Below, in pieces: positions 22,121-62,768 of a DNA stretch of 64,000 nucleotides (within the stretch, counting starts at the first letter, position 1; every line of letters starts with the position of its first letter). Under the pieces are notes generated by a model that worked only from the letters and a program-made list of their open reading frames with translations, had not been told where the DNA came from and did not search any database. The stretch is taken from sequence record NC_049340.1; one strand, written 5' to 3'. A program made the position numbers and the translations under genes.

Positions 22121-22441
22121 ATGAGTGAAGAATTTTTAAGTGCATTAAAACATGTATCAAAAACAGTAAGACCACGTACTAAAACATCAGTAGTTTTAAA
22201 GATGGTTGAAGAAGTTGGTGAATTAAGTACAGAAGTTGCAATTAGTGATGGATTATCATATAAAGAACGTGGTAAAGATGGTGTAGTTGGTGAAGCTGTT
22301 GATGTTATTTTATGTGCAATGGATTTGATTGTTATGGAACAGCCTAACATAACACAAGACGAATTAATGGAAGTAATGTACAGAAAGGCTAATAAATGGC
22401 AAAGGTCGTGTACAGATAACCACAAAATTGATAAAAACTAA
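22121..22441 (+). CDS. MazG-like nucleotide pyrophosphohydrolase
   Basis: KMVEEVGEL ... GEAVDVILCAMD acidic motif. Confidence 0.8.
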   Translation: MSEEFLSALKHVSKTVRPRTKTSVVLKMVEEVGELSTEVAISDGLSYKERGKDGVVGEAVDVILCAMDLIVMEQPNITQDELMEVMYRKANKWQRSCTDNHKIDKN

Positions 22442-45154: not shown

Positions 45155-45428
45155 AGACCACATTAAACAACATGGTTTTGAATCAGCACTAAAGGCATAT
45201 AATGAAGATGAACTATTAGAACTTTTAAAGAAATCAGTATATGATTTAAATCTAACATTACATGAGGTTAATAATAGAGGTATGTTTGTTACAGTAGCAC
45301 AAACCACACAACATTCAGAAAGTCCTAAATACCGACACGATATAACAGAAATTAGAAATATTAAATTAGTATCACTTGATAAAAATTTATACAGAAAATC
45401 ACCACTAAACAAATCAAATGAAAAATAA
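45141..45428 (+). CDS. Hypothetical protein
   Basis: ATG at 45141. Confidence 0.6.
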   Translation: MILSEDHIKQHGFESALKAYNEDELLELLKKSVYDLNLTLHEVNNRGMFVTVAQTTQHSESPKYRHDITEIRNIKLVSLDKNLYRKSPLNKSNEK

Positions 45429-45870
45429 TAAATTAAAACATTTTACGGATGCTGTAACAGCATTCCACACAGCATTTAACGCACCAGTATCACACGAACC
45501 AACATTAATTACAAAAGACCGTTCGGATTTACGTTTTGAATTAATGCGTGAAGAGAATCAAGAATATGCGGATGCGGTAAAGGATGGTAATTTAATTGAA
45601 GTTGGTGATGCCCTTGGTGATATGTTATACATTCTTTGTGGTACTATTATCGAACATGGAATGCAACATAAAATTACTGAGGTGTTTGATGAGATACAAG
45701 CATCTAATATGTCTAAGTTGGGTGAGGATGGTAAACCAATCTTACGAGAAGATGGTAAGATTTTAAAGGGTAAGAATTACTTTAAACCAAACATTGCACA
45801 ATTCTTTGAGAGTATATATGTAAAGGAACTTAGATATTTATTAGATGGTAGGATTGCAGATAACAAATAA
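45418..45870 (+). CDS. MazG-like/PRA-PH-like nucleotide pyrophosphohydrolase
   Basis: LMREENQEY..EVGDALGDMLY..EIQASNMSK..REDGKILKG. Confidence 0.85.
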   Translation: MKNNKLKHFTDAVTAFHTAFNAPVSHEPTLITKDRSDLRFELMREENQEYADAVKDGNLIEVGDALGDMLYILCGTIIEHGMQHKITEVFDEIQASNMSKLGEDGKPILREDGKILKGKNYFKPNIAQFFESIYVKELRYLLDGRIADNK

Positions 45871-50922: not shown

Positions 50923-51578
50923 ATGCCAAAAGTAGGAGTAGTTAAATTAGATGAATTTGGCGAGTACACAGGTCAATCAACTTTTAGTGGTACAGCATCA
51001 ATACCTATTCATTACAGTTTTCAAAAAATAAATTTTATTTCAATAGTGATGATTTAACTAAGATAGGTATTGACCCAATAACATCAACAACATCAGCTAA
51101 ATCACGTGATGGTGCAATTGCTTTACTAGAGTTTGAGTTAGGTAGAGCATCAAACAAAGAAAAGTATTTATGGTTTAATGTTGTATTTAATCTTGATAGT
51201 AAACTAGAAACCAATGAAGTTTCTAAGAAAATAACGGATTATGCTTATGGTAGTCGTGTAAACTCTTCAATAATTGAGTTTTCTTATGGTAAGTGTTTAA
51301 AGGCTATCACACCACATGCAAATGAACTTATATACATTAAAACCGATGATAATTTCGTTGAACTTAAACGAAAGTCAACTATTTATCAACAACGTAATGT
51401 GTTCATAAAATACACCCAACAAAGAGAAGAGTTCCTAAAAAGCATTGTTGATGGAATCCAAACAATAAATGATAAGTTATTAACGTTTTTTGTTGATTGT
51501 GAAAGTGAAGAGCGTGTTGCAGAACAAATAGACATTATAGAAAATTCAAAAAACTTATTAGGTGCAGGAAGTAAGTAA
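50923..51578 (+). CDS. Hypothetical protein (apparent 1-nt deletion at 51023-28)
   Basis: Restoring one A gives a continuous ORF of about 218 aa, missed by the track. Confidence 0.55.
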
Positions 51579-52407
51579 CATACTAAATAAAACATTAGAT
51601 GAGGTTATTGAATGGTATATATCAAGCGATATCTATACCGATGATATTTCAGAACTAAGAGATAACAAACCAAAAATAACCTCATCTAAACAAAAACCAT
51701 ATGGTAGCTATAATCGAAGAAAACAATTAATAACAATTTGTAGTGATTTTCTTTCAGTTGTTATTAAAAAACCACAGGTTGATATTGACTTACACTCATA
51801 TTATTTACCTAAATTGGGTAGGTATATAGAACATGCATATATTTCAAATAAATCTGCTTTATTTGTTATTGTGTTACATGAAGTTGGACACCACATACAA
51901 AACCTTAGAAGAAAGTCAATATACCAACAATACATTCACAGAGTATCGTGGCTTAATGATAGAACATATTCGAATGGTAAAAGTATTAAAACTATAGAAT
52001 GTGAAACAACATATAATGAACTTGTTTGGTTTGAGTTATCAGGTAATGTTATTTACATTCAAGAAATATCAAACGATAGAGATAAAGTAAGAGAAATATT
52101 CAAAAACAGTTCTTTGAAAATTGAACCATATGTTTGGAGTGGTACTAAATCACCTAGAACAAAAACTAAGTGGTGTTTAGAATACTATTGTTTACATCAT
52201 AGTAATCTAGAACTTTTATCCAAAGGTTTTATAAAGTATAAGGATGAAGTATGTGAATGTAAGATTTACAAGAACAATAGTAAATCAAACAGTTCATATG
52301 TATTTCACATGCCAGCAAAGAGTATTGTTATAAAAAACATTAGGTATAAAAATATGTCAATAAATAAAACTATAGGAAGTGTGATAAAAAATTTGCACAC
52401 CAATTAA
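51562..52407 (+). CDS. Hypothetical protein with HEXXH zinc-metalloprotease-like motif
   Basis: IVLHEVGHHIQ. Confidence 0.55.
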   Translation: MQEVSNILNKTLDEVIEWYISSDIYTDDISELRDNKPKITSSKQKPYGSYNRRKQLITICSDFLSVVIKKPQVDIDLHSYYLPKLGRYIEHAYISNKSALFVIVLHEVGHHIQNLRRKSIYQQYIHRVSWLNDRTYSNGKSIKTIECETTYNELVWFELSGNVIYIQEISNDRDKVREIFKNSSLKIEPYVWSGTKSPRTKTKWCLEYYCLHHSNLELLSKGFIKYKDEVCECKIYKNNSKSNSSYVFHMPAKSIVIKNIRYKNMSINKTIGSVIKNLHTN

Positions 52408-55801: not shown

Positions 55802-56914
55802 ATGAATATACAAGAAGTATTAAATAAGTCTCTTGAAGAGCGTAAAGAAATTTTCAACAATGCTAAAGTAGCATATTATGAAACAGACTCACCAATAATG
55901 TCTGATTCTGATTATGATTTGTTAGAAGAGTCTATCATTACAGATTCACATGATGATATGTTTATTGGTGTTAATTCAAGACACAATAAAGCCGAACACA
56001 GAAATAAAATGTTATCATTAAAAAAGCATAACATTAATATTGATGGGTCTGATACAGATTCTGTATTACTTGAAGCATTCAATAAATTGGGTGGTGGTAG
56101 ATACACATTAGGTTTATCAATGAAGTATGATGGATTGGCTGTTGATGTAGATTTTGAAAACCGAACACTAAAACAAATTGCAACTCGTGGTGATGGTAGT
56201 ATGGGAGTTAATAGAACAAATAAACTAAGACATATTATTGATAACGACCCATCTTGGCAAATGTTATTTGATAAGTTTGTTACAGGTAATGTTCGTTGTG
56301 AGTGTATAGTTGATTACCCAACATTTGAAGAACATTATATAGATAGTGGTAAGAAACATCCACGTAATGTAGCAAGTGGATTAGTTGGTGATGAGAATCT
56401 TGAAGCTGGTGTAGGTCATTTAAGATTGGTTGCGTTAGAGGGTATTGATTCTAGTGGCTTAATTATCACATCAAGAACATTAGACATGTATTTGACTGAT
56501 GTTAGAAATGAAATTAACAATATTGAAACATATGAAGACCTAAAACAAGTGTTCCAATCATTTAAAGAACGTAGACAGGACTTCATAGAACCAACAGATG
56601 GTTTAGTACTTTCAAAGTCATCAACCAATATGGAATTTAAACATGATGGTAAGTATCCTGAACATGCATTGTGTATTAAGTTCAGTTCACCAAACTTTAA
56701 AGCTACTGTTACTGATATTGAATGGAATTTACAAAAGACAGGTAGATATGTACCTAAGGTATATTTCACACCAATTACCGTTGATGGTAGAGATATTGTA
56801 AAGGCTAGTGGACACAACCTAGATTGGTTAGTTAGAAATAACATCAAGGTTGGTAAAGAAATTACTATACAATTATCAGGTGACATCATACCATATATTT
56901 TGACAGATGTATAA
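55802..56914 (+). CDS. ligA: NAD+-dependent DNA ligase, minimal (Ia + adenylation + OB domains)
   Basis: YYETDSPIMSDSDYDLL, MLSL, KYDG, TRGDG..G, PTDGLV, ASGHN, GDIIP; ends after the OB fold. Confidence 0.88.
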   Translation: MNIQEVLNKSLEERKEIFNNAKVAYYETDSPIMSDSDYDLLEESIITDSHDDMFIGVNSRHNKAEHRNKMLSLKKHNINIDGSDTDSVLLEAFNKLGGGRYTLGLSMKYDGLAVDVDFENRTLKQIATRGDGSMGVNRTNKLRHIIDNDPSWQMLFDKFVTGNVRCECIVDYPTFEEHYIDSGKKHPRNVASGLVGDENLEAGVGHLRLVALEGIDSSGLIITSRTLDMYLTDVRNEINNIETYEDLKQVFQSFKERRQDFIEPTDGLVLSKSSTNMEFKHDGKYPEHALCIKFSSPNFKATVTDIEWNLQKTGRYVPKVYFTPITVDGRDIVKASGHNLDWLVRNNIKVGKEITIQLSGDIIPYILTDV

Positions 56915-57248
56915 CGATAAGCAACAATGGTATTTAAATAGCAGAGGACTCTTTACACTTGAACTAGGTAAAGAGTACTTTGTTACTCATAAGGCATCAC
57001 CAAATATGGTAGTTCGTCTTAGATTAGTAAAGGTAACACCAAAAGGTTTTAATTTACTAAATGTACTAACAGGTAAGTGTGTATTATATCCACATATTTA
57101 CCCATATAAAAAGAATGATTCGTTTAATGGTTATGATAACCCTATGAAGTTTTGGTTAAATAAAAATTGGCAATTTGTCAAAGTTACTGAAAAGAACGAA
57201 CATATAGTAGTAACAACAAGTAAATATATAAGTAACAACTATGTTTAA
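56907..57248 (+). CDS. Hypothetical protein
   Basis: 113-aa ORF overlapping the ligase stop. Confidence 0.7.
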   Translation: MYNDKQQWYLNSRGLFTLELGKEYFVTHKASPNMVVRLRLVKVTPKGFNLLNVLTGKCVLYPHIYPYKKNDSFNGYDNPMKFWLNKNWQFVKVTEKNEHIVVTTSKYISNNYV

Positions 57249-57663
57249 TTTATTCAAACGAAATAAGACAAAGGGTTTAAAAACTAACCTACTTAGAAAA
57301 ATAAGGTCACATAAATTTAAATACTATCCTGAGGATAGATTGATTATTATATCTGATAAAAATTACAATGAGGTTTTTAGATTAGAGAAAATAACCATAC
57401 CAACAAACAAAAGAAACTATAGTTTCTCAGGACAATTACATGGTATTATCATTTATTTTGATGATTATTATGATTTTATGAAATATATTTACTATTATAT
57501 TTTATGTCCTAATACTGATATATTCGATATAGCAACCAGCTATTCTAGTACTAAAAAGTTACATAATGTTGTACATAGATTATATCATTATAATAAGTAC
57601 TATAAAAGGGTTAAGAAAGCATCAATAATAAATAATGAAACACCTAAGCGTTTATGGAAATAA
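57241..57663 (+). CDS. Hypothetical protein
   Basis: 140-aa ORF. Confidence 0.65.
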   Translation: MFNLFKRNKTKGLKTNLLRKIRSHKFKYYPEDRLIIISDKNYNEVFRLEKITIPTNKRNYSFSGQLHGIIIYFDDYYDFMKYIYYYILCPNTDIFDIATSYSSTKKLHNVVHRLYHYNKYYKRVKKASIINNETPKRLWK

Positions 57664-58693
57664 GTGCTAAAGAAATTAAATTGAGTGGTAGTGTTTTATA
57701 CATACCAATATACTCTATGCGTGATAAAAAAACTGGGCAATATATTCCATCAATGGATGGTAATATAAACAGTATGCTACATAGATTATATAATAATAGA
57801 CATGATGTAAATGAGGTGATGATTGCTATACCAAATATTAAGAAATTAAATATTGGTGAACTTGAAAAACTCAGAAAATCTATTAAGTCTATTGGTATAA
57901 ATAATGTTGATTATTTGCCGTTATCATGGTTATATGGTTCTAGTGTAGGTAATACAAGATTAAAGGCATTAGCATTTGAAGATAAATTCGATACGGAATA
58001 TATAGAGCCTACCGTTACTGTTTGTGAATTACCAATTGATATTAAATCTAATACCAAGGTTTTTTATAATTATAATTGGAATGCTGTTGACAACACAAAT
58101 GATTTATTAAATCTTAGTTTCAACGTGAGGTTGAGTTATCGAAGAAACATGATACATTTTTATTCTCAGATATTCAATATAGATATTGGGCTAGTAGGAT
58201 TAGTCAAATAAAGGACATTAAAAGTAAATTTTGGAGGTCTATCGACATTTATTCTAGTGAATTATTTGAAGAAATATCACAAACAGAAATTGATAATTTC
58301 ATGGATGGGATATCAAAAAAAGAACTTAACTTCTTTAATAATATATTACCGAAAGAAGATATTGTATTTTATCCGATGAGGGTTGATGACCCTAGATATG
58401 ACTTCAAATGCATATTGGATTATGTTGAAGAGAGTAATAAACTAATGGTTATAACAAACCCAACAAATATTGAAATAGAGTATAATCATCATATCATTGA
58501 TTTATCTGATAGTGTTAATAAAAGAGGTTTATACTTTAAGATATTATCCAAGTTAAAATCATCTGATAGAATCATACATGCGTGTGATGATGTACACATA
58601 TCATTATTTGAACAATTATCTTTAAGTGAGGCTGATGTTACATTTAACGACACTATGCACATTTTAGATATTGATACATATATAAAATCCTAG
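57654..58693 (+). CDS. Putative DNA glycosyltransferase (GT-B-like; apparent 1-nt deletion at 58118-20 joins two track ORFs)
   Basis: Joined ORF of about 346 aa: VLYIPIYSMRD..G.Y....DGN and IVFYPMRVDDPRY; cluster context. The fold call is an inference. Confidence 0.45.
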
Positions 58694-58699
58694 ACCAAA

Positions 58700-58830
58700 C
58701 TCTACTTAAATCCACGATACGAACCCCCGAAATAATGGATAAGTTTTAACCTTAAATATTAGCATATGATTAGTTTATGGGGGTTTACTAAATCTATGCA
58801 AATTTGTTCCACAACCTACTACGGGGAACT
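58700..58830. ncRNA. Candidate structured RNA (loop-loop/pseudoknot)
   Basis: Stems 58710-14/58736-40, 58762-74/58787-99 and 58806-10/58825-29; loop aaccccc (58722-28) is complementary to loop gggggtt (58779-85). Confidence 0.4.
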
Positions 58831-58832
58831 TC

Positions 58833-58892
58833 AAAACACACCGAATTTTTTCGGTGTGTTTCTTGTTTATATAATATTTTTGTTTATATTTG
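58833..58892 (+). promoter_or_regulatory. Hairpin plus sigma-A promoter
   Basis: aaacacaccgaa-tttt-ttcggtgtgttt; TTG 58863-65, 19-nt spacer, TATATTTG 58885-92. Confidence 0.7.
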
Positions 58893-58912
58893 CAGTATCA
58901 AAATAATAACAG

Positions 58913-60478
58913 ATGAAGAAACCACACATTATTATATTAGCTTGCGGTAAGGCAACAAGACTATTACCGATACACAATAATAACTACCCAAAGTTATTAT
59001 GTAATGCAGGTACTAAAACAATAATGGAACGTATTTTAGAATCACAACCAATTTATAGAAAAAGAACTATTGTTGTAAATAATAAACAATATTATATGCA
59101 ATTATTAACTTATTTAAAGTTGATTGGTATTGATGATGTGAATGTTGTTTGTTTAAAAGATGGTGGTACAAGTACACACGATGACTTGAAGTTATTCATC
59201 CAAGGTGAATCCGAACATGATTTTGATGATGTAATTCTTACATGGTCTGATATAATGCCAAAAAAGATATATGATTTGCGTGGTGTGAACTTTAAAAATA
59301 ATGTTATATTCACAGACACTAATCCAAGACATAGATACAATGCATCAAACAATACAATAGAGCATAGACCTTTACAAGATGGTAATGTTGTTGGGTTATA
59401 TTTTATAAAGAACTTATTAGATTTTATAAATCCTAATGATTATCCATATGGGTTGGATGTTATTGATATTTTCAAAGACCGTGATTTTGATACAATTGAA
59501 GTTCCTTTCCATGACCTTGGTGATGTTGATAAGTATACCGAATTTATATCACATGAGGACATTTCAGCACGTTTCTTTAATAAATTGACCATATACCCTA
59601 ATGAAGTGTTAAAGTGCGCTAAAAATGATATGGGTAAGTCTATAATCAACCGTGAGGGTGATTATTATGAGCATATAAAAGGTACGCAAGCAGGTGAAGT
59701 ATTCCCTGAACTAATTGAACGTGATTCGGATTATGCAATAATGTTAAAGCGTGTATTAGGTCATACTATTTATGATTATATTTTATGGTATGGTGATGTT
59801 AATCACAAAGATTATGAACTAGCGCATAGGTTAATTGGTATGTTTAAAAATAACATTGATAAACTACACAACAGTAGTTCACATTCATTAACAAAAGAAG
59901 AAATAACATCAGCAACAGGTATTGAATATTATGCTAGTGTTATTGAGAGGTTAAAAAAGGTTAATAATTTAATACCAAATGTTACAAATGTTAATGGTAT
60001 TGATGTTAGTTTTGCGGAAGTTGTTTACCATATTCTACCTGAATTAAGAACTAGATTATGTGATGAGTTCAAATTCATTCATGGTGATACAAACACAACA
60101 AATGTGATGATAACTGATAACAAAGAAATTAAATTGATTGACCCACGTGGACATTTTGGTGGTGTTCCGTATTATGGTGACCCTAACTACGACCATGCAA
60201 AGTTTTTATATGGTTTGAGTGGTTATGATGTATTTAATTTAACGGCTGATGTTCGTTATACATACTCGAACGGTGAAATATGGTTTGAAGATAACTTCGG
60301 ATATGATTTAGATAAGTTAACAAATGACACCAAACTAAAATACTTAGTTGGTATATGCTGGTTAAAGCTACCATTATATACAATAAATAATTTAAACAAA
60401 GCTACTATTGCATACGCTAAAGGTATGCAGATGGTTACAAAATACGGAAAACAATTATTAATAGAATTAAATAACTAG
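58913..60478 (+). CDS. NTP-transferase (sugar nucleotidyltransferase-like) fused to an APH/choline-kinase-like phosphotransferase
   Basis: IIILACGKATRLLP..PKLL, ILTWSD, DLGDVDKY; kinase IHGD....NV, LIDPRG, YDHAK. Confidence 0.8.
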   Translation: MKKPHIIILACGKATRLLPIHNNNYPKLLCNAGTKTIMERILESQPIYRKRTIVVNNKQYYMQLLTYLKLIGIDDVNVVCLKDGGTSTHDDLKLFIQGESEHDFDDVILTWSDIMPKKIYDLRGVNFKNNVIFTDTNPRHRYNASNNTIEHRPLQDGNVVGLYFIKNLLDFINPNDYPYGLDVIDIFKDRDFDTIEVPFHDLGDVDKYTEFISHEDISARFFNKLTIYPNEVLKCAKNDMGKSIINREGDYYEHIKGTQAGEVFPELIERDSDYAIMLKRVLGHTIYDYILWYGDVNHKDYELAHRLIGMFKNNIDKLHNSSSHSLTKEEITSATGIEYYASVIERLKKVNNLIPNVTNVNGIDVSFAEVVYHILPELRTRLCDEFKFIHGDTNTTNVMITDNKEIKLIDPRGHFGGVPYYGDPNYDHAKFLYGLSGYDVFNLTADVRYTYSNGEIWFEDNFGYDLDKLTNDTKLKYLVGICWLKLPLYTINNLNKATIAYAKGMQMVTKYGKQLLIELNN

Positions 60479-60482
60479 ACAT

Positions 60483-61187
60483 ATGACACAACAGATGATT
60501 GAAACCTATAAGGAGTTTGTAGGTTTATTTAAATACTTTCCAACAGATGCTAGATTAACATTTGTTAGACATGGTGAGACTGATAATAATTTGAATAATA
60601 TTATTCAGGGTGGTGCAAAAACAAACGATACTAAATTAAATAGAAAGGGTATTATCCAATCACATGATTTAGGTAAGAAAATGGATATGGAAGTTTTTGA
60701 TTTTACATTTACTTCACCATCTGTTAGAACCAAAGAAACTTTTGAAATTTTACGAAAGTATTTCTTATCACAAAACGAACAACAATTCGAATTACCTACA
60801 TTAACTGAGTTTGATTTTGGTGATATGGATGGTAAATTAAAAGATGATACTGAATATTATACTTTAATTGATTCGATGTTTGCTAATAAGAAAACAAATT
60901 TATCAATTGATGGTTCAGAAACATTAGAGCATATGTTTGAACGTTGTGCAAAATCAATTAGAGCAATGGTTAAAATTATTGCGGAACAATTCGAACAAAA
61001 GAAAGCAGAGTTACCAAAAGATAGACCATTGAACATTTTGATTACAGGTCATGGTATGTTTATTGGATTCCTTTTAAATATTTTAATAAAGAGGTCAATA
61101 GGTATGGAATATAAACCAAATAATGGTGATGCTTACACCTTAATTATTGGTGAAAGTGGTAAACATAAATTAGATGCTTATGTTTAA
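60483..61187 (+). CDS. Histidine phosphatase (phosphoglycerate-mutase family)
   Basis: FVRHGET, TSPSVRTKET, LTEFDFG, ITGHG. Confidence 0.88.
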   Translation: MTQQMIETYKEFVGLFKYFPTDARLTFVRHGETDNNLNNIIQGGAKTNDTKLNRKGIIQSHDLGKKMDMEVFDFTFTSPSVRTKETFEILRKYFLSQNEQQFELPTLTEFDFGDMDGKLKDDTEYYTLIDSMFANKKTNLSIDGSETLEHMFERCAKSIRAMVKIIAEQFEQKKAELPKDRPLNILITGHGMFIGFLLNILIKRSIGMEYKPNNGDAYTLIIGESGKHKLDAYV

Positions 61188-61851
61188 TTATAGGTCATTT
61201 AATGATGCCTATCATGGAATAAAACACTATATAAAAACACGGTATGAATATGAATATGATGGCAGAAATGGTAAAGTATATGAAGTTATTGGATTATCAT
61301 ATCGTGTAGATACTGTTTGTACATTTCCATTAATTAAACATAATACATCAATAACACGTGAGTACTGCCGTGACTTCTATTCTAAGTTATTCATAAACGC
61401 ACCAAGTGATACTGATATTAAATGGTTCAAGGAAACTTATAAGGATAATGTAAAAACATTTTTAGATAATCCTAAGGGTCTTTCTGATGGATTTAATACA
61501 ATTTATGGTAATAGGATTAGTAGACAATTACCAATTGTTAAGCGTGAGTTATTAAACGAGAAAGGTTCACGTAGAGCAGTAATAAAAATATTATCCGAAA
61601 CTGATAATGTTTTATTGGGAACTGATGAGGTTATTGAATATCCATGCATAGATAGTATATCTTTGTTTGTTCGTGATGGTAAATTAAATGTACATACACA
61701 TATGCGCTCAAATAATATGGGTACTGTTGCAGTATTAGATATGTACTTAATAGGTAGATTACAATCCCAATTGGCTAATGAGTTAAATTTAAAAACTGGT
61801 GTATTTTCATGTTCGATTGCATCAGCACATATTTTTGAAAAAGATTTATAA
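61174..61851 (+). CDS. Thymidylate-synthase homolog, predicted dCMP-specific (dCMP hydroxymethylase/hydroxylase-like)
   Basis: SRRAV, EYPC, VRDGKL..HMRSNN, SAHIF; Asp at +11 from the RS motif, as in T4 gp42 (canonical TS has Asn). Confidence 0.75.
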   Translation: MLMFNYRSFNDAYHGIKHYIKTRYEYEYDGRNGKVYEVIGLSYRVDTVCTFPLIKHNTSITREYCRDFYSKLFINAPSDTDIKWFKETYKDNVKTFLDNPKGLSDGFNTIYGNRISRQLPIVKRELLNEKGSRRAVIKILSETDNVLLGTDEVIEYPCIDSISLFVRDGKLNVHTHMRSNNMGTVAVLDMYLIGRLQSQLANELNLKTGVFSCSIASAHIFEKDL

Positions 61852-61897
61852 AAATTGGAAACACTTTTTTGTGTTTCCAATTTTTTGTTTATTTTTG
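61850..61897 (+). promoter_or_regulatory. Palindromic promoter upstream of the phage sigma gene
   Basis: aaaaattggaaacac-N6-gtgtttccaattttt; TTTG 61868-71, 18-nt spacer, TATTTTTG 61890-97. Confidence 0.7.
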
Positions 61898-61925: not shown

Positions 61926-62768
61926 ATGTTAAGAAGAACCAAGAGTAATGTTTTATTAAGCAAAGAATTTAGAAAATTACAAAGAACACCTAAACACGAA
62001 TCTGATAGAATCAAATACAAAAATAAATCATATATACCTAGTGATGTTGTAAAATTATATTCAACAAATACAGATGATTTTGAACCAACCGAAGAAAACA
62101 GAGAACATTTATTAATTACATTATTTCCTTTGATTAATGATATTTCTTTTAGAATATGTAAAAGACATGGGTTTAGAATAGAGTATGAAGATTGTATTAA
62201 TCAAGGTATGATTGGTGCTTCAATAGCTACTGATAGATACATCAAAAAGTCTAAAGTTAAGAAACAAGTTGCCAAGTTATCATCTTATGCATATCCATAT
62301 ATTGATAAGTATATTAATGAGTTTTGTAGAGAGCATTCAAATCCATTATCATACGGAACAACTCAATGGATTGAAGCCAATGAAACAACAAATGTTAATA
62401 GTGGTGATGCACCTATAAGTACAGATGATAGTGTTTCTTCTTACTTTGATGTAGCACCTACTAAATTACTTCAAGATGTACAAGATTCTGAATATACAGA
62501 AAGAATAGATAAAGCGATTAAATACGCTCGCATGTTATTTGGTGGATTAACACCAGTCCAAAAACAAATAGTATCAATTAATTTCGGCATTACCGAAGAC
62601 TCAAAGACACCAAAAGAAATTGCTAAACAACTTAGTATGCGTATTAAGGATGTTGAGTATGAACTTGAATGTTCAGTAGAACAAATGAAAGAAGTTTTCA
62701 CAGACCCTGATGAAATTATTGAAGTAATTAACACTATTAAGAACACTAACATTTCTAAATTCATATAG
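61926..62768 (+). CDS. Sigma-70-family RNA polymerase sigma factor (regions 2 and 4)
   Basis: YEDCINQGMIG..A.DRY..KLSSYAYPYI; LTPVQKQIVSINFG..TPKEIAKQL helix-turn-helix. Confidence 0.82.
   Translation: MLRRTKSNVLLSKEFRKLQRTPKHESDRIKYKNKSYIPSDVVKLYSTNTDDFEPTEENREHLLITLFPLINDISFRICKRHGFRIEYEDCINQGMIGASIATDRYIKKSKVKKQVAKLSSYAYPYIDKYINEFCREHSNPLSYGTTQWIEANETTNVNSGDAPISTDDSVSSYFDVAPTKLLQDVQDSEYTERIDKAIKYARMLFGGLTPVQKQIVSINFGITEDSKTPKEIAKQLSMRIKDVEYELECSVEQMKEVFTDPDEIIEVINTIKNTNISKFI

Follow-up and report, generated by a model that had tools for sequence, protein, structure and literature searches.

A candidate glycosyl-5-hydroxycytosine pathway in the Tenacibaculum jumbo phage PTm1

Introduction

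A recently described phage pathway replaces the cytosine of DNA with sugar-coated 5-hydroxycytosine, which allows escape from host nucleases (Lee et al., PMC13326640; Mahler et al., Cell Host Microbe 2025). In phages RB69 and DLP3, the thymidylate synthase (TS) homologs gp48 and gp80 carry a flavin and use O2 to convert deoxycytidine monophosphate (dCMP) to 5-hydroxy-dCMP (5hodCMP) (Lee et al., NAR 2026, PMC13326640). Such 5hodCMP synthases are marked by the substitution D169N (Escherichia coli numbering), and all nine of the diverse D169N homologs selected for testing made 5-hydroxydeoxycytidine (5hodC), as does the TS homolog of Shewanella phage Thanatos (Lee et al., PMC13326640). In phage HY126, AfhE phosphorylates arabinose 5-phosphate at C1, the HAD enzyme AfhF removes the 5-phosphate, and AfhE then makes uridine diphosphate (UDP)-arabinose. 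RB69 gp46:47 and DLP3 gp79 have been assigned as DNA arabinosyltransferase 1 (Lee et al., PMC13326640). This article analyzes a stretch of 64,000 nucleotides from sequence record NC_049340.1 (hereafter the window), part of the genome of Tenacibaculum phage PTm1, and within it a cluster of four adjacent genes for a putative split glycosyltransferase (GT1), a nucleotidyltransferase-kinase fusion (ORF-165), a histidine phosphatase (ORF-166) and a TS homolog (ORF-167).

Judged from its sequence, the cluster is likely to encode a glycosyl-5-hydroxycytosine pathway of the RB69/DLP3/HY126 kind. This reading is directly supported by homologies, active-site signatures, the GT-B fold of an intact GT1 relative and a conserved gene order. 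Because three of the four genes are homologous to the arabinosyl-5-hydroxycytosine genes of RB69, DLP3 and HY126, and an isomerase is present in the clusters of PTm1's relatives, the base and the sugar are probably the known ones. For the base, 5-hydroxycytosine is the most likely candidate, and for the sugar arabinose is probable. Granted a glycosylated 5-hydroxycytosine, the balance tips slightly towards arabinose, and the chances that the transferase functions in actual phage stocks are about even.

The window corresponds to positions 62001-126000 of the PTm1 record (AP019524.1, 224,680 bp, host T. maritimum). Positions are given below as window positions (record position minus 62000) unless the record or another sequence segment is named. 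The 10 kb around the cluster are 100% identical to AP019524.1 and 99.97% identical to the sister phage PTm5. A first-pass annotation of the window had proposed these four open reading frames (ORFs) as a cytosine hypermodification cluster; their adjacency, coordinates and + strand orientation are confirmed, and the proposal itself gains support from homology to the RB69, DLP3 and HY126 genes. The genes are tightly packed. GenBank labels the two pieces of the first gene (ORF-163 and ORF-164) hypothetical, ORF-165 a guanylyltransferase, ORF-166 a histidine phosphatase and ORF-167 a 'thymidylate synthase and pyrimidine hydroxymethylase'.

Results

The thymidylate synthase homolog

ORF-167 matches the Pfam family Thymidylat_synt (PF00303, E=9.6e-9), and its active-site residues can be compared with those of three TS-family enzymes (Table 1). 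The EYPC of ORF-167 aligns with APCH of E. coli ThyA, placing the catalytic Cys at E. coli C146, and a Glu stands three residues ahead of it (L143E). ORF-167 contains RSNNMGTVAVLD, in which the alignment places an Asn at the E. coli D169 position and an Asp at the N177 position, 11 residues after the Arg of the RS motif (N177D). Both residues, at +3 and +11, had been pointed out in the first-pass annotation, and its suggestion that the Asp indicates a dCMP substrate is supported; RB69 gp48 and T4 gp42 have the same residue. The TS homologs of two related metagenomic contigs, L010 and L012, also read RSNN...D. A ten-residue segment with W80 and W83 is present in ThyA and T4 gp42 and missing from RB69 gp48, ORF-167 and these two metagenomic relatives.

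Table 1. Active-site regions of ORF-167 and three TS-family enzymes, in E. coli numbering
Protein	143 region	169 region	177
E. coli ThyA	LAPC	RSCD	N
T4 gp42	DFMC	RSND	D
RB69 gp48	EYPC	RSQN	D
PTm1 ORF-167	EYPC	RSNN	D

The full-length comparison points to the same family. ORF-167 is 38% identical to RB69 gp48 (E=8.5e-51), and in tblastn searches the RB69ORF048c match spans 96% of the protein at 38% identity, with further homologs in T4-like phages of Acinetobacter, Serratia and Klebsiella. The best solved structures in a PDB sequence search are 9iqu, 9iqc and 9ir2 (E=3e-42), the best being a Mosigvirus-type enzyme; their printed sequence is almost identical to RB69 gp48. The TS homolog of Rhizobium phage RL38J1 matches over the C-terminal half at 37% identity. 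PTm1 also encodes a separate canonical ThyA (ORF-285, Pfam E=3.8e-82, motif RSCD...N), which leaves dTMP synthesis independent of ORF-167. Because ORF-167 shares D169N, N177D, L143E and Cys146 with RB69 gp48, lacks the W80/W83 segment and coexists with this ThyA, it is best read as a predicted 5hodCMP synthase and not as a T4-type hydroxymethylase.

The T4-like alternative, in which ORF-167 is a folate-dependent dCMP hydroxymethylase and the resulting 5-hydroxymethylcytosine is then glycosylated, agrees with the label in the sequence record and with the N177D substitution and acidic residue 143 that T4 gp42 and ORF-167 have in common. It is very improbable given that the hydroxymethylase features D169 and the folate-contacting W80/W83 segment are both missing from ORF-167 in the alignment, that the protein is only 22% identical to gp42 (and to ThyA), and that T4 b-gt, the beta-glucosyltransferase, finds no match in the PTm1 genome at E<=1 (tblastn). 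The first-pass annotation had followed the T4 precedent, and this part of it does not stand: the Asn at +3 is the diagnostic residue of 5hodCMP synthases, and T4 gp42 keeps the Asp.

Two further observations concern TS genes. The canonical ThyA of PTm1 (record 199563-201146; L008:20563-22146) is 527 amino acids long and covers the full 266-position Pfam profile, and therefore holds an insertion of about 200-260 residues. This is possibly an intein or homing element, in a genome where split ribonucleotide reductase and DNA polymerase genes are also annotated. In the T4-like phages Entb_45 and Serratia LC53, the TS homolog adjoins a gene with a chorismate-mutase domain, and the RB69 cluster has a U32-peptidase-like gene, gp50 (L009:4511-5680). 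U32-family proteins include prephenate-dependent RNA hydroxylases. These neighbors may be a sign that 5-hydroxycytosine can be made by an oxygen-independent route; both genes are absent from PTm1.

Putative sugar-activation genes

ORF-165 (521 amino acids) matches phrog_4098 over residues 5-511 (E=1.3e-75) and has only marginal Pfam matches, to NTP_transferase and kinase families. RB69 gp53 and gp52 cover positions 1-219 and 219-559 of the same profile as its two halves; a sequencing error has divided what is a single gene (Lee et al., PMC13326640). Full-length homologs of ORF-165 (98% coverage, ~27% identity, E ~1e-35) were found by tblastn in 370 phage records, mostly of Mosigvirus, Acinetobacter and Serratia phages and nearly all from the arabosyl-5-hydroxycytosine groups. 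The motifs GKATRL, HGDTNTTN and IDPRG...YGDPNYD, which comprise the catalytic motifs of both domains, align with RB69. A PDB sequence search with ORF-165 came back empty. These matches make ORF-165 a full-length homolog of RB69 gp52:53, the counterpart of HY126 AfhE, and a predicted arabinose-5-phosphate kinase/UDP-arabinose pyrophosphorylase.

One of the 370 records is Chryseobacterium phage MA9V-2, a jumbo phage of Bacteroidota, in which a dihydrofolate reductase, a KpsF/GutQ isomerase and an AfhE-like fusion lie side by side (OR513085.1, record 184054-187693; L003:7110-10749). This fusion is 29% identical to ORF-165; no homolog of the TS, GT1 or histidine phosphatase was found in the ~70 kb of MA9V-2 examined.

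ORF-166 carries the RHGE and GHG catalytic motifs of histidine phosphatases. Its closest solved structures are TIGAR (3dcy), a fructose-2,6-bisphosphatase, and CobC, an alpha-ribazole-5'-phosphate phosphatase, activities chemically close to removal of the 5-phosphate from a furanose bisphosphate. A histidine phosphatase also stands between the AfhE-like and TS genes in contigs L010 and L012. A tblastn search of the PTm1 genome with the HAD phosphatase RB69 gp51, of the AfhF family, gives no match at E<=1. The proposal made here is that ORF-166 functionally replaces AfhF without belonging to its family. Among isolated phages this phosphatase was found in PTm1 and PTm5 only, and scans of IMG/VR with the single sequence and with an alignment returned PTm1 itself only. 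Production of a nucleoside diphosphate sugar by ORF-165 and the phosphatase, as first suggested, remains the most plausible reading of the pair.

The split glycosyltransferase

GT1 lies in two reading frames, frame 0 spanning 57654-58211 and frame 2 being open over 58118-58693. The two pieces were searched separately. The N-terminal piece matches positions 3-121 of phrog_3891 (E=3.9e-7) and the C-terminal piece, colinear with it, positions 188-228 (E=5e-4). RB69 gp47 (E=1.9e-95) and gp46, likewise a single gene, are the two halves of the same PHROG, and gp47 as a query retrieves the N-terminal piece from the PTm1 genome (E=2.5e-4). The connection to RB69 required the PHROG hidden Markov models (HMMs) and a profile comparison: Pfam and NCBIfam gave nothing meaningful for the two pieces and 26 intact relatives, a tblastn search of the pieces against 50,697 phage records returned PTm1 and PTm5 only, and a PDB sequence search with the glycosyltransferase profile gave only chance antibody matches.

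An exhaustive HMMER search with the N-terminal piece found intact metagenomic proteins of 344-356 amino acids that are 39-42% identical to it. One of these, P0002, aligns with the N-terminal piece as far as residue 154 and with the C-terminal piece over residues 154-351 (37% identity, E=2e-34). Of the family positions, 17 are conserved at >=85%, and the two PTm1 pieces together retain every one of them. By hhalign, the profile of the 26 intact relatives matches RB69 gp47 (97.4% probability, E=1.4e-11) and gp46 (97.4%, E=1e-11).

The structural evidence comes from an AlphaFold model of P0002 (pLDDT, the predicted local distance difference test score, 92.7), that is, of the intact relative and not of the broken PTm1 gene. 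In Foldseek the model matches the GT-B enzymes AviGT4, MshA (3c4q) and BshA (3mbo) with probability 1.00, and also 6kih; 3c4q, 3mbo and 6kih are among the structural matches listed for the RB69 and DLP3 arabinosyltransferases (Lee et al., PMC13326640). The best matches among viral models are a protein of Acinetobacter phage KARL-1 (E=1.8e-14) and RB69ORF047c, both at Foldseek probability 1.00. From these matches, 57654-58693 is one split gene homologous to RB69 gp46:47, and the modeled fold of the relative makes its product a predicted GT-B glycosyltransferase, which supports the first-pass identification of the split gene as a glycosyltransferase.

A glycosyltransferase and sugar genes could act on a target other than DNA, such as the head fibers or the host surface, with the TS gene adjacent by coincidence. 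PTm1 does have head-fiber-like appendages, and glycosyltransferase clusters that modify polysaccharides are frequent in jumbo phages. The same gene set, however, adjoins the same D169N TS homolog in RB69 and in the metagenomic relatives of PTm1, P0002 matches at 94% coverage a gene adjoining the TS homolog in Acinetobacter phage AB-Navy71, and GT1 is homologous to proteins assigned as DNA arabinosyltransferase 1, so that a non-DNA target is improbable, to nearly the same degree as hydroxymethylcytosine.

Frame breaks in PTm1 and PTm5

PTm1 and PTm5 differ over the 10 kb by only three single-base indels, at ~58036, ~58122 and 61892, the first two within GT1 and the third in the T tract just past the hairpin that closes the cluster. 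In PTm5 the C-terminal frame of GT1 is open from ~58028 and overlaps the N-terminal piece of PTm1 by 28 identical residues. Each record thus has its own break, and the two combined give one ancestral GT1 frame of ~346 amino acids. The intact relatives support a junction (...LSF-K-REVEL...) at 58118-58124. The first-pass annotation had repaired the gene by a single T at the T-run near 58155; PTm5 and the relatives move the break to ~58118-58124, and read-through at the T-run would give ~12 wrong residues. A programmed frameshift is unlikely, as the break sites differ between the two phages, the junction has no slippery heptamer and the relatives read straight through.

Because all 17 conserved positions are kept, the break must be very recent or a sequencing error. 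Elsewhere PTm1 and PTm5 differ by ~9 single-base indels in 45.7 kb (L008 versus L015), several in homopolymer runs, and in the deposited RB69 sequence the same two genes are likewise split by sequencing errors (Lee et al., PMC13326640). The frequency of indels between the records and the same artefact in the same genes of RB69 make sequencing error a serious possibility.

If the breaks are instead true, the pathway may be partly off in the sequenced isolates: the hydroxylase would work, the transferases would be frameshifted, and the DNA would hold bare 5-hydroxycytosine or a mixture while the sugar-nucleotide genes stand idle. That two of the three indels fall in GT1, with a separate break in each phage, fits such a loss, as do a second, GT32-like transferase that is intact in PTm5 (ORF-255) but broken in PTm1 by a single differing base and the absence from PTm1 of the isomerase gene of its relatives. 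The retained GT1 residues and the catalytic motifs of ORF-165 and ORF-166 mean that any loss would be very recent, and both the indel pattern and the RB69 precedent are compatible with error. A partly disabled pathway is accordingly a minority reading, with perhaps the best claim among the alternatives.

Two other genes of PTm1 are affected in similar ways. A Hef-like homing-endonuclease gene is split by a single-base indel, and the annotated dihydrofolate reductase (record 160507-160734; L007:31507-31734) has 75 amino acids that cover positions 2-69 of the 159-position Pfam profile, and is truncated or frame-broken.

Related clusters and the missing isomerase

Metagenomic contigs with cluster proteins 34-45% identical to those of PTm1 preserve the gene order. 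Contig L010 reads GT1, SIS isomerase, an ORF of 82 amino acids, AfhE-like, His_Phos_1 and TS. Contig L012 reads GT32-like, thymidylate-kinase-like, GT1, LicD-like, SIS, AfhE-like, His_Phos_1 and TS, and L013 and L014 have GT1 followed by SIS. The SIS proteins of the relatives share 30% identity with the RB69 arabinose-5-phosphate isomerase, and a SIS gene adjoins the ORF-165 orthologs in L010, L012 and MA9V-2. PTm1 has no match to five SIS queries at E<=1, and the 220-bp gap between GT1 and ORF-165, where the relatives have this gene, holds a terminator-like hairpin and no SIS remnant. RB69 gp55 (SIS), gp45 and gp50 likewise find no significant matches in the PTm1 genome (tblastn). If the pathway runs, arabinose 5-phosphate would therefore have to come from the host.

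The relatives bear on whether the sugar is arabinose at all. ORF-165 and ORF-166 might activate another pentose or a hexose, giving the same base a glycoside that is not yet described. ORF-165 is distant from the Straboviridae enzymes, the phosphatase is from another superfamily, the relatives carry LicD-like, GT32-like and GT25-like genes not seen in RB69 or DLP3, and 5-hydroxycytosine can carry hexoses, as Rhizobium phage RL38J1 shows. Set against this, a KpsF/GutQ-type SIS gene lies between GT1 and the AfhE-like gene in every sufficiently long related contig, and because these SIS proteins are homologous to the RB69 isomerase, arabinose 5-phosphate is indicated as the entry metabolite. A different sugar on 5-hydroxycytosine is thus unlikely, somewhat more so than a partly disabled pathway. 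We give an equally low chance to a broader departure, in which the PTm1 lineage makes a glycoside unlike the Straboviridae arabinosides. The sugar or its linkage could differ, or enzymes like the LicD-like and GT32/GT25-like proteins of the relatives could add a further phospho-substituent, and the histidine phosphatase might act like a phosphopentomutase and not as a simple phosphatase.

The extra genes of the relatives (L012:4542-5402 and L013:38-2301) encode a LicD-like protein (E=6.9e-8), a GT25-family transferase and a 389-amino-acid protein with weak GT2/GT47 matches. They hint at decorations more elaborate than, or different from, those of PTm1.

Genomic neighborhood and other loci

The features of the window are collected in Table 2. 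ORF-165, ORF-166 and ORF-167 form one unit between the two terminator-like hairpins.

Table 2. Features of the cluster and its surroundings in the window
Feature	Position	Strand	Basis or remark
GT1 N-terminal piece, ORF-163 (annotated ORF runs out of frame to 58211)	57654..58121	+	phrog_3891
GT1 C-terminal piece, other frame; ORF-164 is the ATG-started part, 58301-58693	58118..58693	+	phrog_3891
AfhE-like bifunctional enzyme ORF-165, predicted N-terminal sugar-1-phosphate nucleotidylyltransferase and C-terminal APH/choline-kinase-like sugar kinase	58913..60478	+	phrog_4098
Histidine phosphatase ORF-166	60483..61187	+	His_Phos_1 E=9e-23
Candidate TS-fold dCMP 5-hydroxylase (5hodCMP synthase), ORF-167	61174..61851	+	signature residues, RB69 gp48 homology
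Terminator-like hairpin between GT1 and ORF-165	58834..58861	+	12-bp stem, then T-rich tail
Terminator-like hairpin closing the three-gene unit	61850..61885	+	15-bp stem and T tract
Two small overlapping ORFs, ORF-161 and ORF-162	56907..57663	+	travel with GT1; no family matches
MazG/PRA-PH-type nucleoside triphosphate pyrophosphohydrolase ORF-142	45418..45870	+	PF01503 E=3.6e-14; phrog_671 E=3e-37
Second MazG-like pyrophosphatase ORF-115	22121..22441	+	phrog_1247 E=1.4e-23; no Pfam match

A second pathway locus lies outside the window at record 181714-183234 (L008:2714-4234) and encodes the GT32-like glycosyltransferase, which has a DXD motif, and a thymidylate-kinase-like protein (record 182.6-183.2 kb) of the same PHROG as RB69 gp45. 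In L012 these two genes are directly upstream of GT1.

ORF-161 and ORF-162 are 49% and 37% identical to two small ORFs of contig L011 (L011:75-873), which there lie upstream of an intact GT1 with a 290-amino-acid HExxH-family gene and a 38-amino-acid ORF in between. The PTm1 member of the HExxH family, ORF-153 (51562-52407, 281 amino acids), has the invariant HExxH motif LHEVGHHIQNLRR and no Pfam or PHROG family; homologs immediately precede GT1 in L010, which has two paralogs, and in L011. ORF-153 was considered as an extra transferase and rejected on account of the invariant HExxH and an AlphaFold model (pLDDT 78) that weakly resembles small metallopeptidases (selecase).

As for removal of unmodified dCTP, T4 gp56 has no significant match in the PTm1 genome (tblastn), and ORF-142 has no BLAST-level similarity to it. 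Speculatively, ORF-142 is a candidate dCTPase and ORF-115 an alternative one.

On either side of the cluster, 55802-56914 encodes a short NAD-dependent DNA ligase of 370 amino acids with adenylation and OB domains only, lacking the zinc finger, HhH and BRCT parts of bacterial LigA. The gene at 61926-62768, right after the closing hairpin, is annotated as hypothetical; its product, of 280 amino acids, matches a PHROG of RNA polymerase sigma factors (phrog_351, E=3e-11).

Discussion

We infer each chemical step of the pathway, the identity of the sugar and any function of the transferase in the sequenced stocks from the comparisons above, and the following scheme is worded accordingly. By analogy with RB69 gp48, ORF-167 would hydroxylate dCMP at C5 to 5hodCMP with O2 and flavin rather than methylene-tetrahydrofolate. 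Kinases, with the thymidylate-kinase-like gene outside the window as a candidate, would take 5hodCMP to the triphosphate, which the phage polymerase would incorporate. For the sugar, the kinase domain of ORF-165 would phosphorylate D-arabinose 5-phosphate at C1; because PTm1 lacks the isomerase that its relatives encode, this substrate would be drawn from the host pathway for 3-deoxy-D-manno-octulosonate (Kdo). ORF-166 would remove the 5-phosphate, the step of AfhF in coliphages, and the N-terminal domain of ORF-165 would make UDP-arabinose. The GT-B transferase would attach the sugar to 5-hydroxycytosine in DNA, and the GT32-like transferase may extend it.

Several points weigh against a complete pathway of this kind. 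Neither deposited genome has an unbroken GT1 frame, and the second transferase is broken in PTm1, so glycosylation may be off in the sequenced stocks. PTm1 encodes no arabinose-5-phosphate isomerase, and in place of a clear dCTPase only generic MazG-like proteins were identified. The sugar could also differ, since ORF-165 is only ~27% identical to the characterized family and the phosphatase is non-homologous to AfhF.

In the literature searched, no paper ties Tenacibaculum or Bacteroidota phages to a 5-hydroxycytosine glycosylation pathway, and the sequence evidence makes PTm1 the first candidate for it found here in a Bacteroidota phage. The unusual sugar suggested in the first-pass annotation does not gain support, and the sugar and the base would be new only for this host group; the chemistry is probably the known arabinosyl-5-hydroxycytosine, already published in 2025-2026. 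The novelty lies in the host phylum, in a phosphatase non-homologous to AfhF, in accessory transferases of other kinds and in the lack of the isomerase.

If the reading is true, glycosylated 5-hydroxycytosine DNA extends from phages that infect Proteobacteria to a jumbo phage whose host, a marine flavobacterium, causes disease in fish and is a target of phage therapy. DNA of this type withstands many restriction enzymes, and defense systems perceive it differently, with effects on host range, sequencing and cloning of the phage. The exchange of a HAD for a histidine phosphatase at one position of the pathway would be a clean case of non-orthologous displacement and would provide a second candidate enzyme for arabinose 1,5-bisphosphate. 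If the frame breaks are real, PTm1 and PTm5, each with its own transferase break, could offer a natural comparison of what the sugar contributes beyond the hydroxyl.

The closest known systems are those of RB69, DLP3 and HY126 (Afh). PTm1 shares with this pathway the D169N/N177D/L143E signature of the TS-fold 5hodCMP synthase, a full-length nucleotidyltransferase-kinase fusion of the AfhE type (RB69 gp52:53, DLP3 gp82) and a clustered gene order, the SIS isomerase (RB69 gp55, DLP3 gp83) being present in its relatives. With RB69 and DLP3 it shares a GT-B transferase of the gp46:47/gp79 family, and with RB69 the thymidylate-kinase-like gene of the gp45 PHROG. It differs in having His_Phos_1 in place of the HAD phosphatase (AfhF/gp51/gp81), in lacking the isomerase itself, in a cluster split over two loci, in protein identities of only 25-38%, and in being a 225-kb jumbo myovirus outside Straboviridae with a marine flavobacterium as host. 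Its extra transferase is GT32-like, in place of a GT-B (gp3, gp76/77), and it has no counterpart of the U32-peptidase-like gp50 of RB69.

Other systems resemble the PTm1 cluster in part. T4 also modifies dCMP before replication with an N177D TS homolog and then glycosylates the new hydroxyl on DNA after replication, but its gp42, in which D169 and the folate-binding Trp segment are retained, produces a hydroxymethyl group, and T4 uses host UDP-glucose with unrelated transferases, the alpha/beta-glucosyltransferases, and no sugar-activation genes. In RL38J1 (Pootjesviridae), a D169N TS homolog makes 5hodCMP, which glycosyltransferases decorate; the sugars there are galactose and glucose, with a UDP-galactopyranose mutase and without an AfhE-like fusion, phosphatase or SIS isomerase. 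Thanatos, like PTm1 a phage of a marine host, has a TS homolog, a 561-amino-acid nucleotidyltransferase/phosphotransferase fusion (TH1_060) and a pentose on cytosine, but it belongs to the T4-like Straboviridae and infects a gammaproteobacterium, and no histidine phosphatase has been described for this phage.

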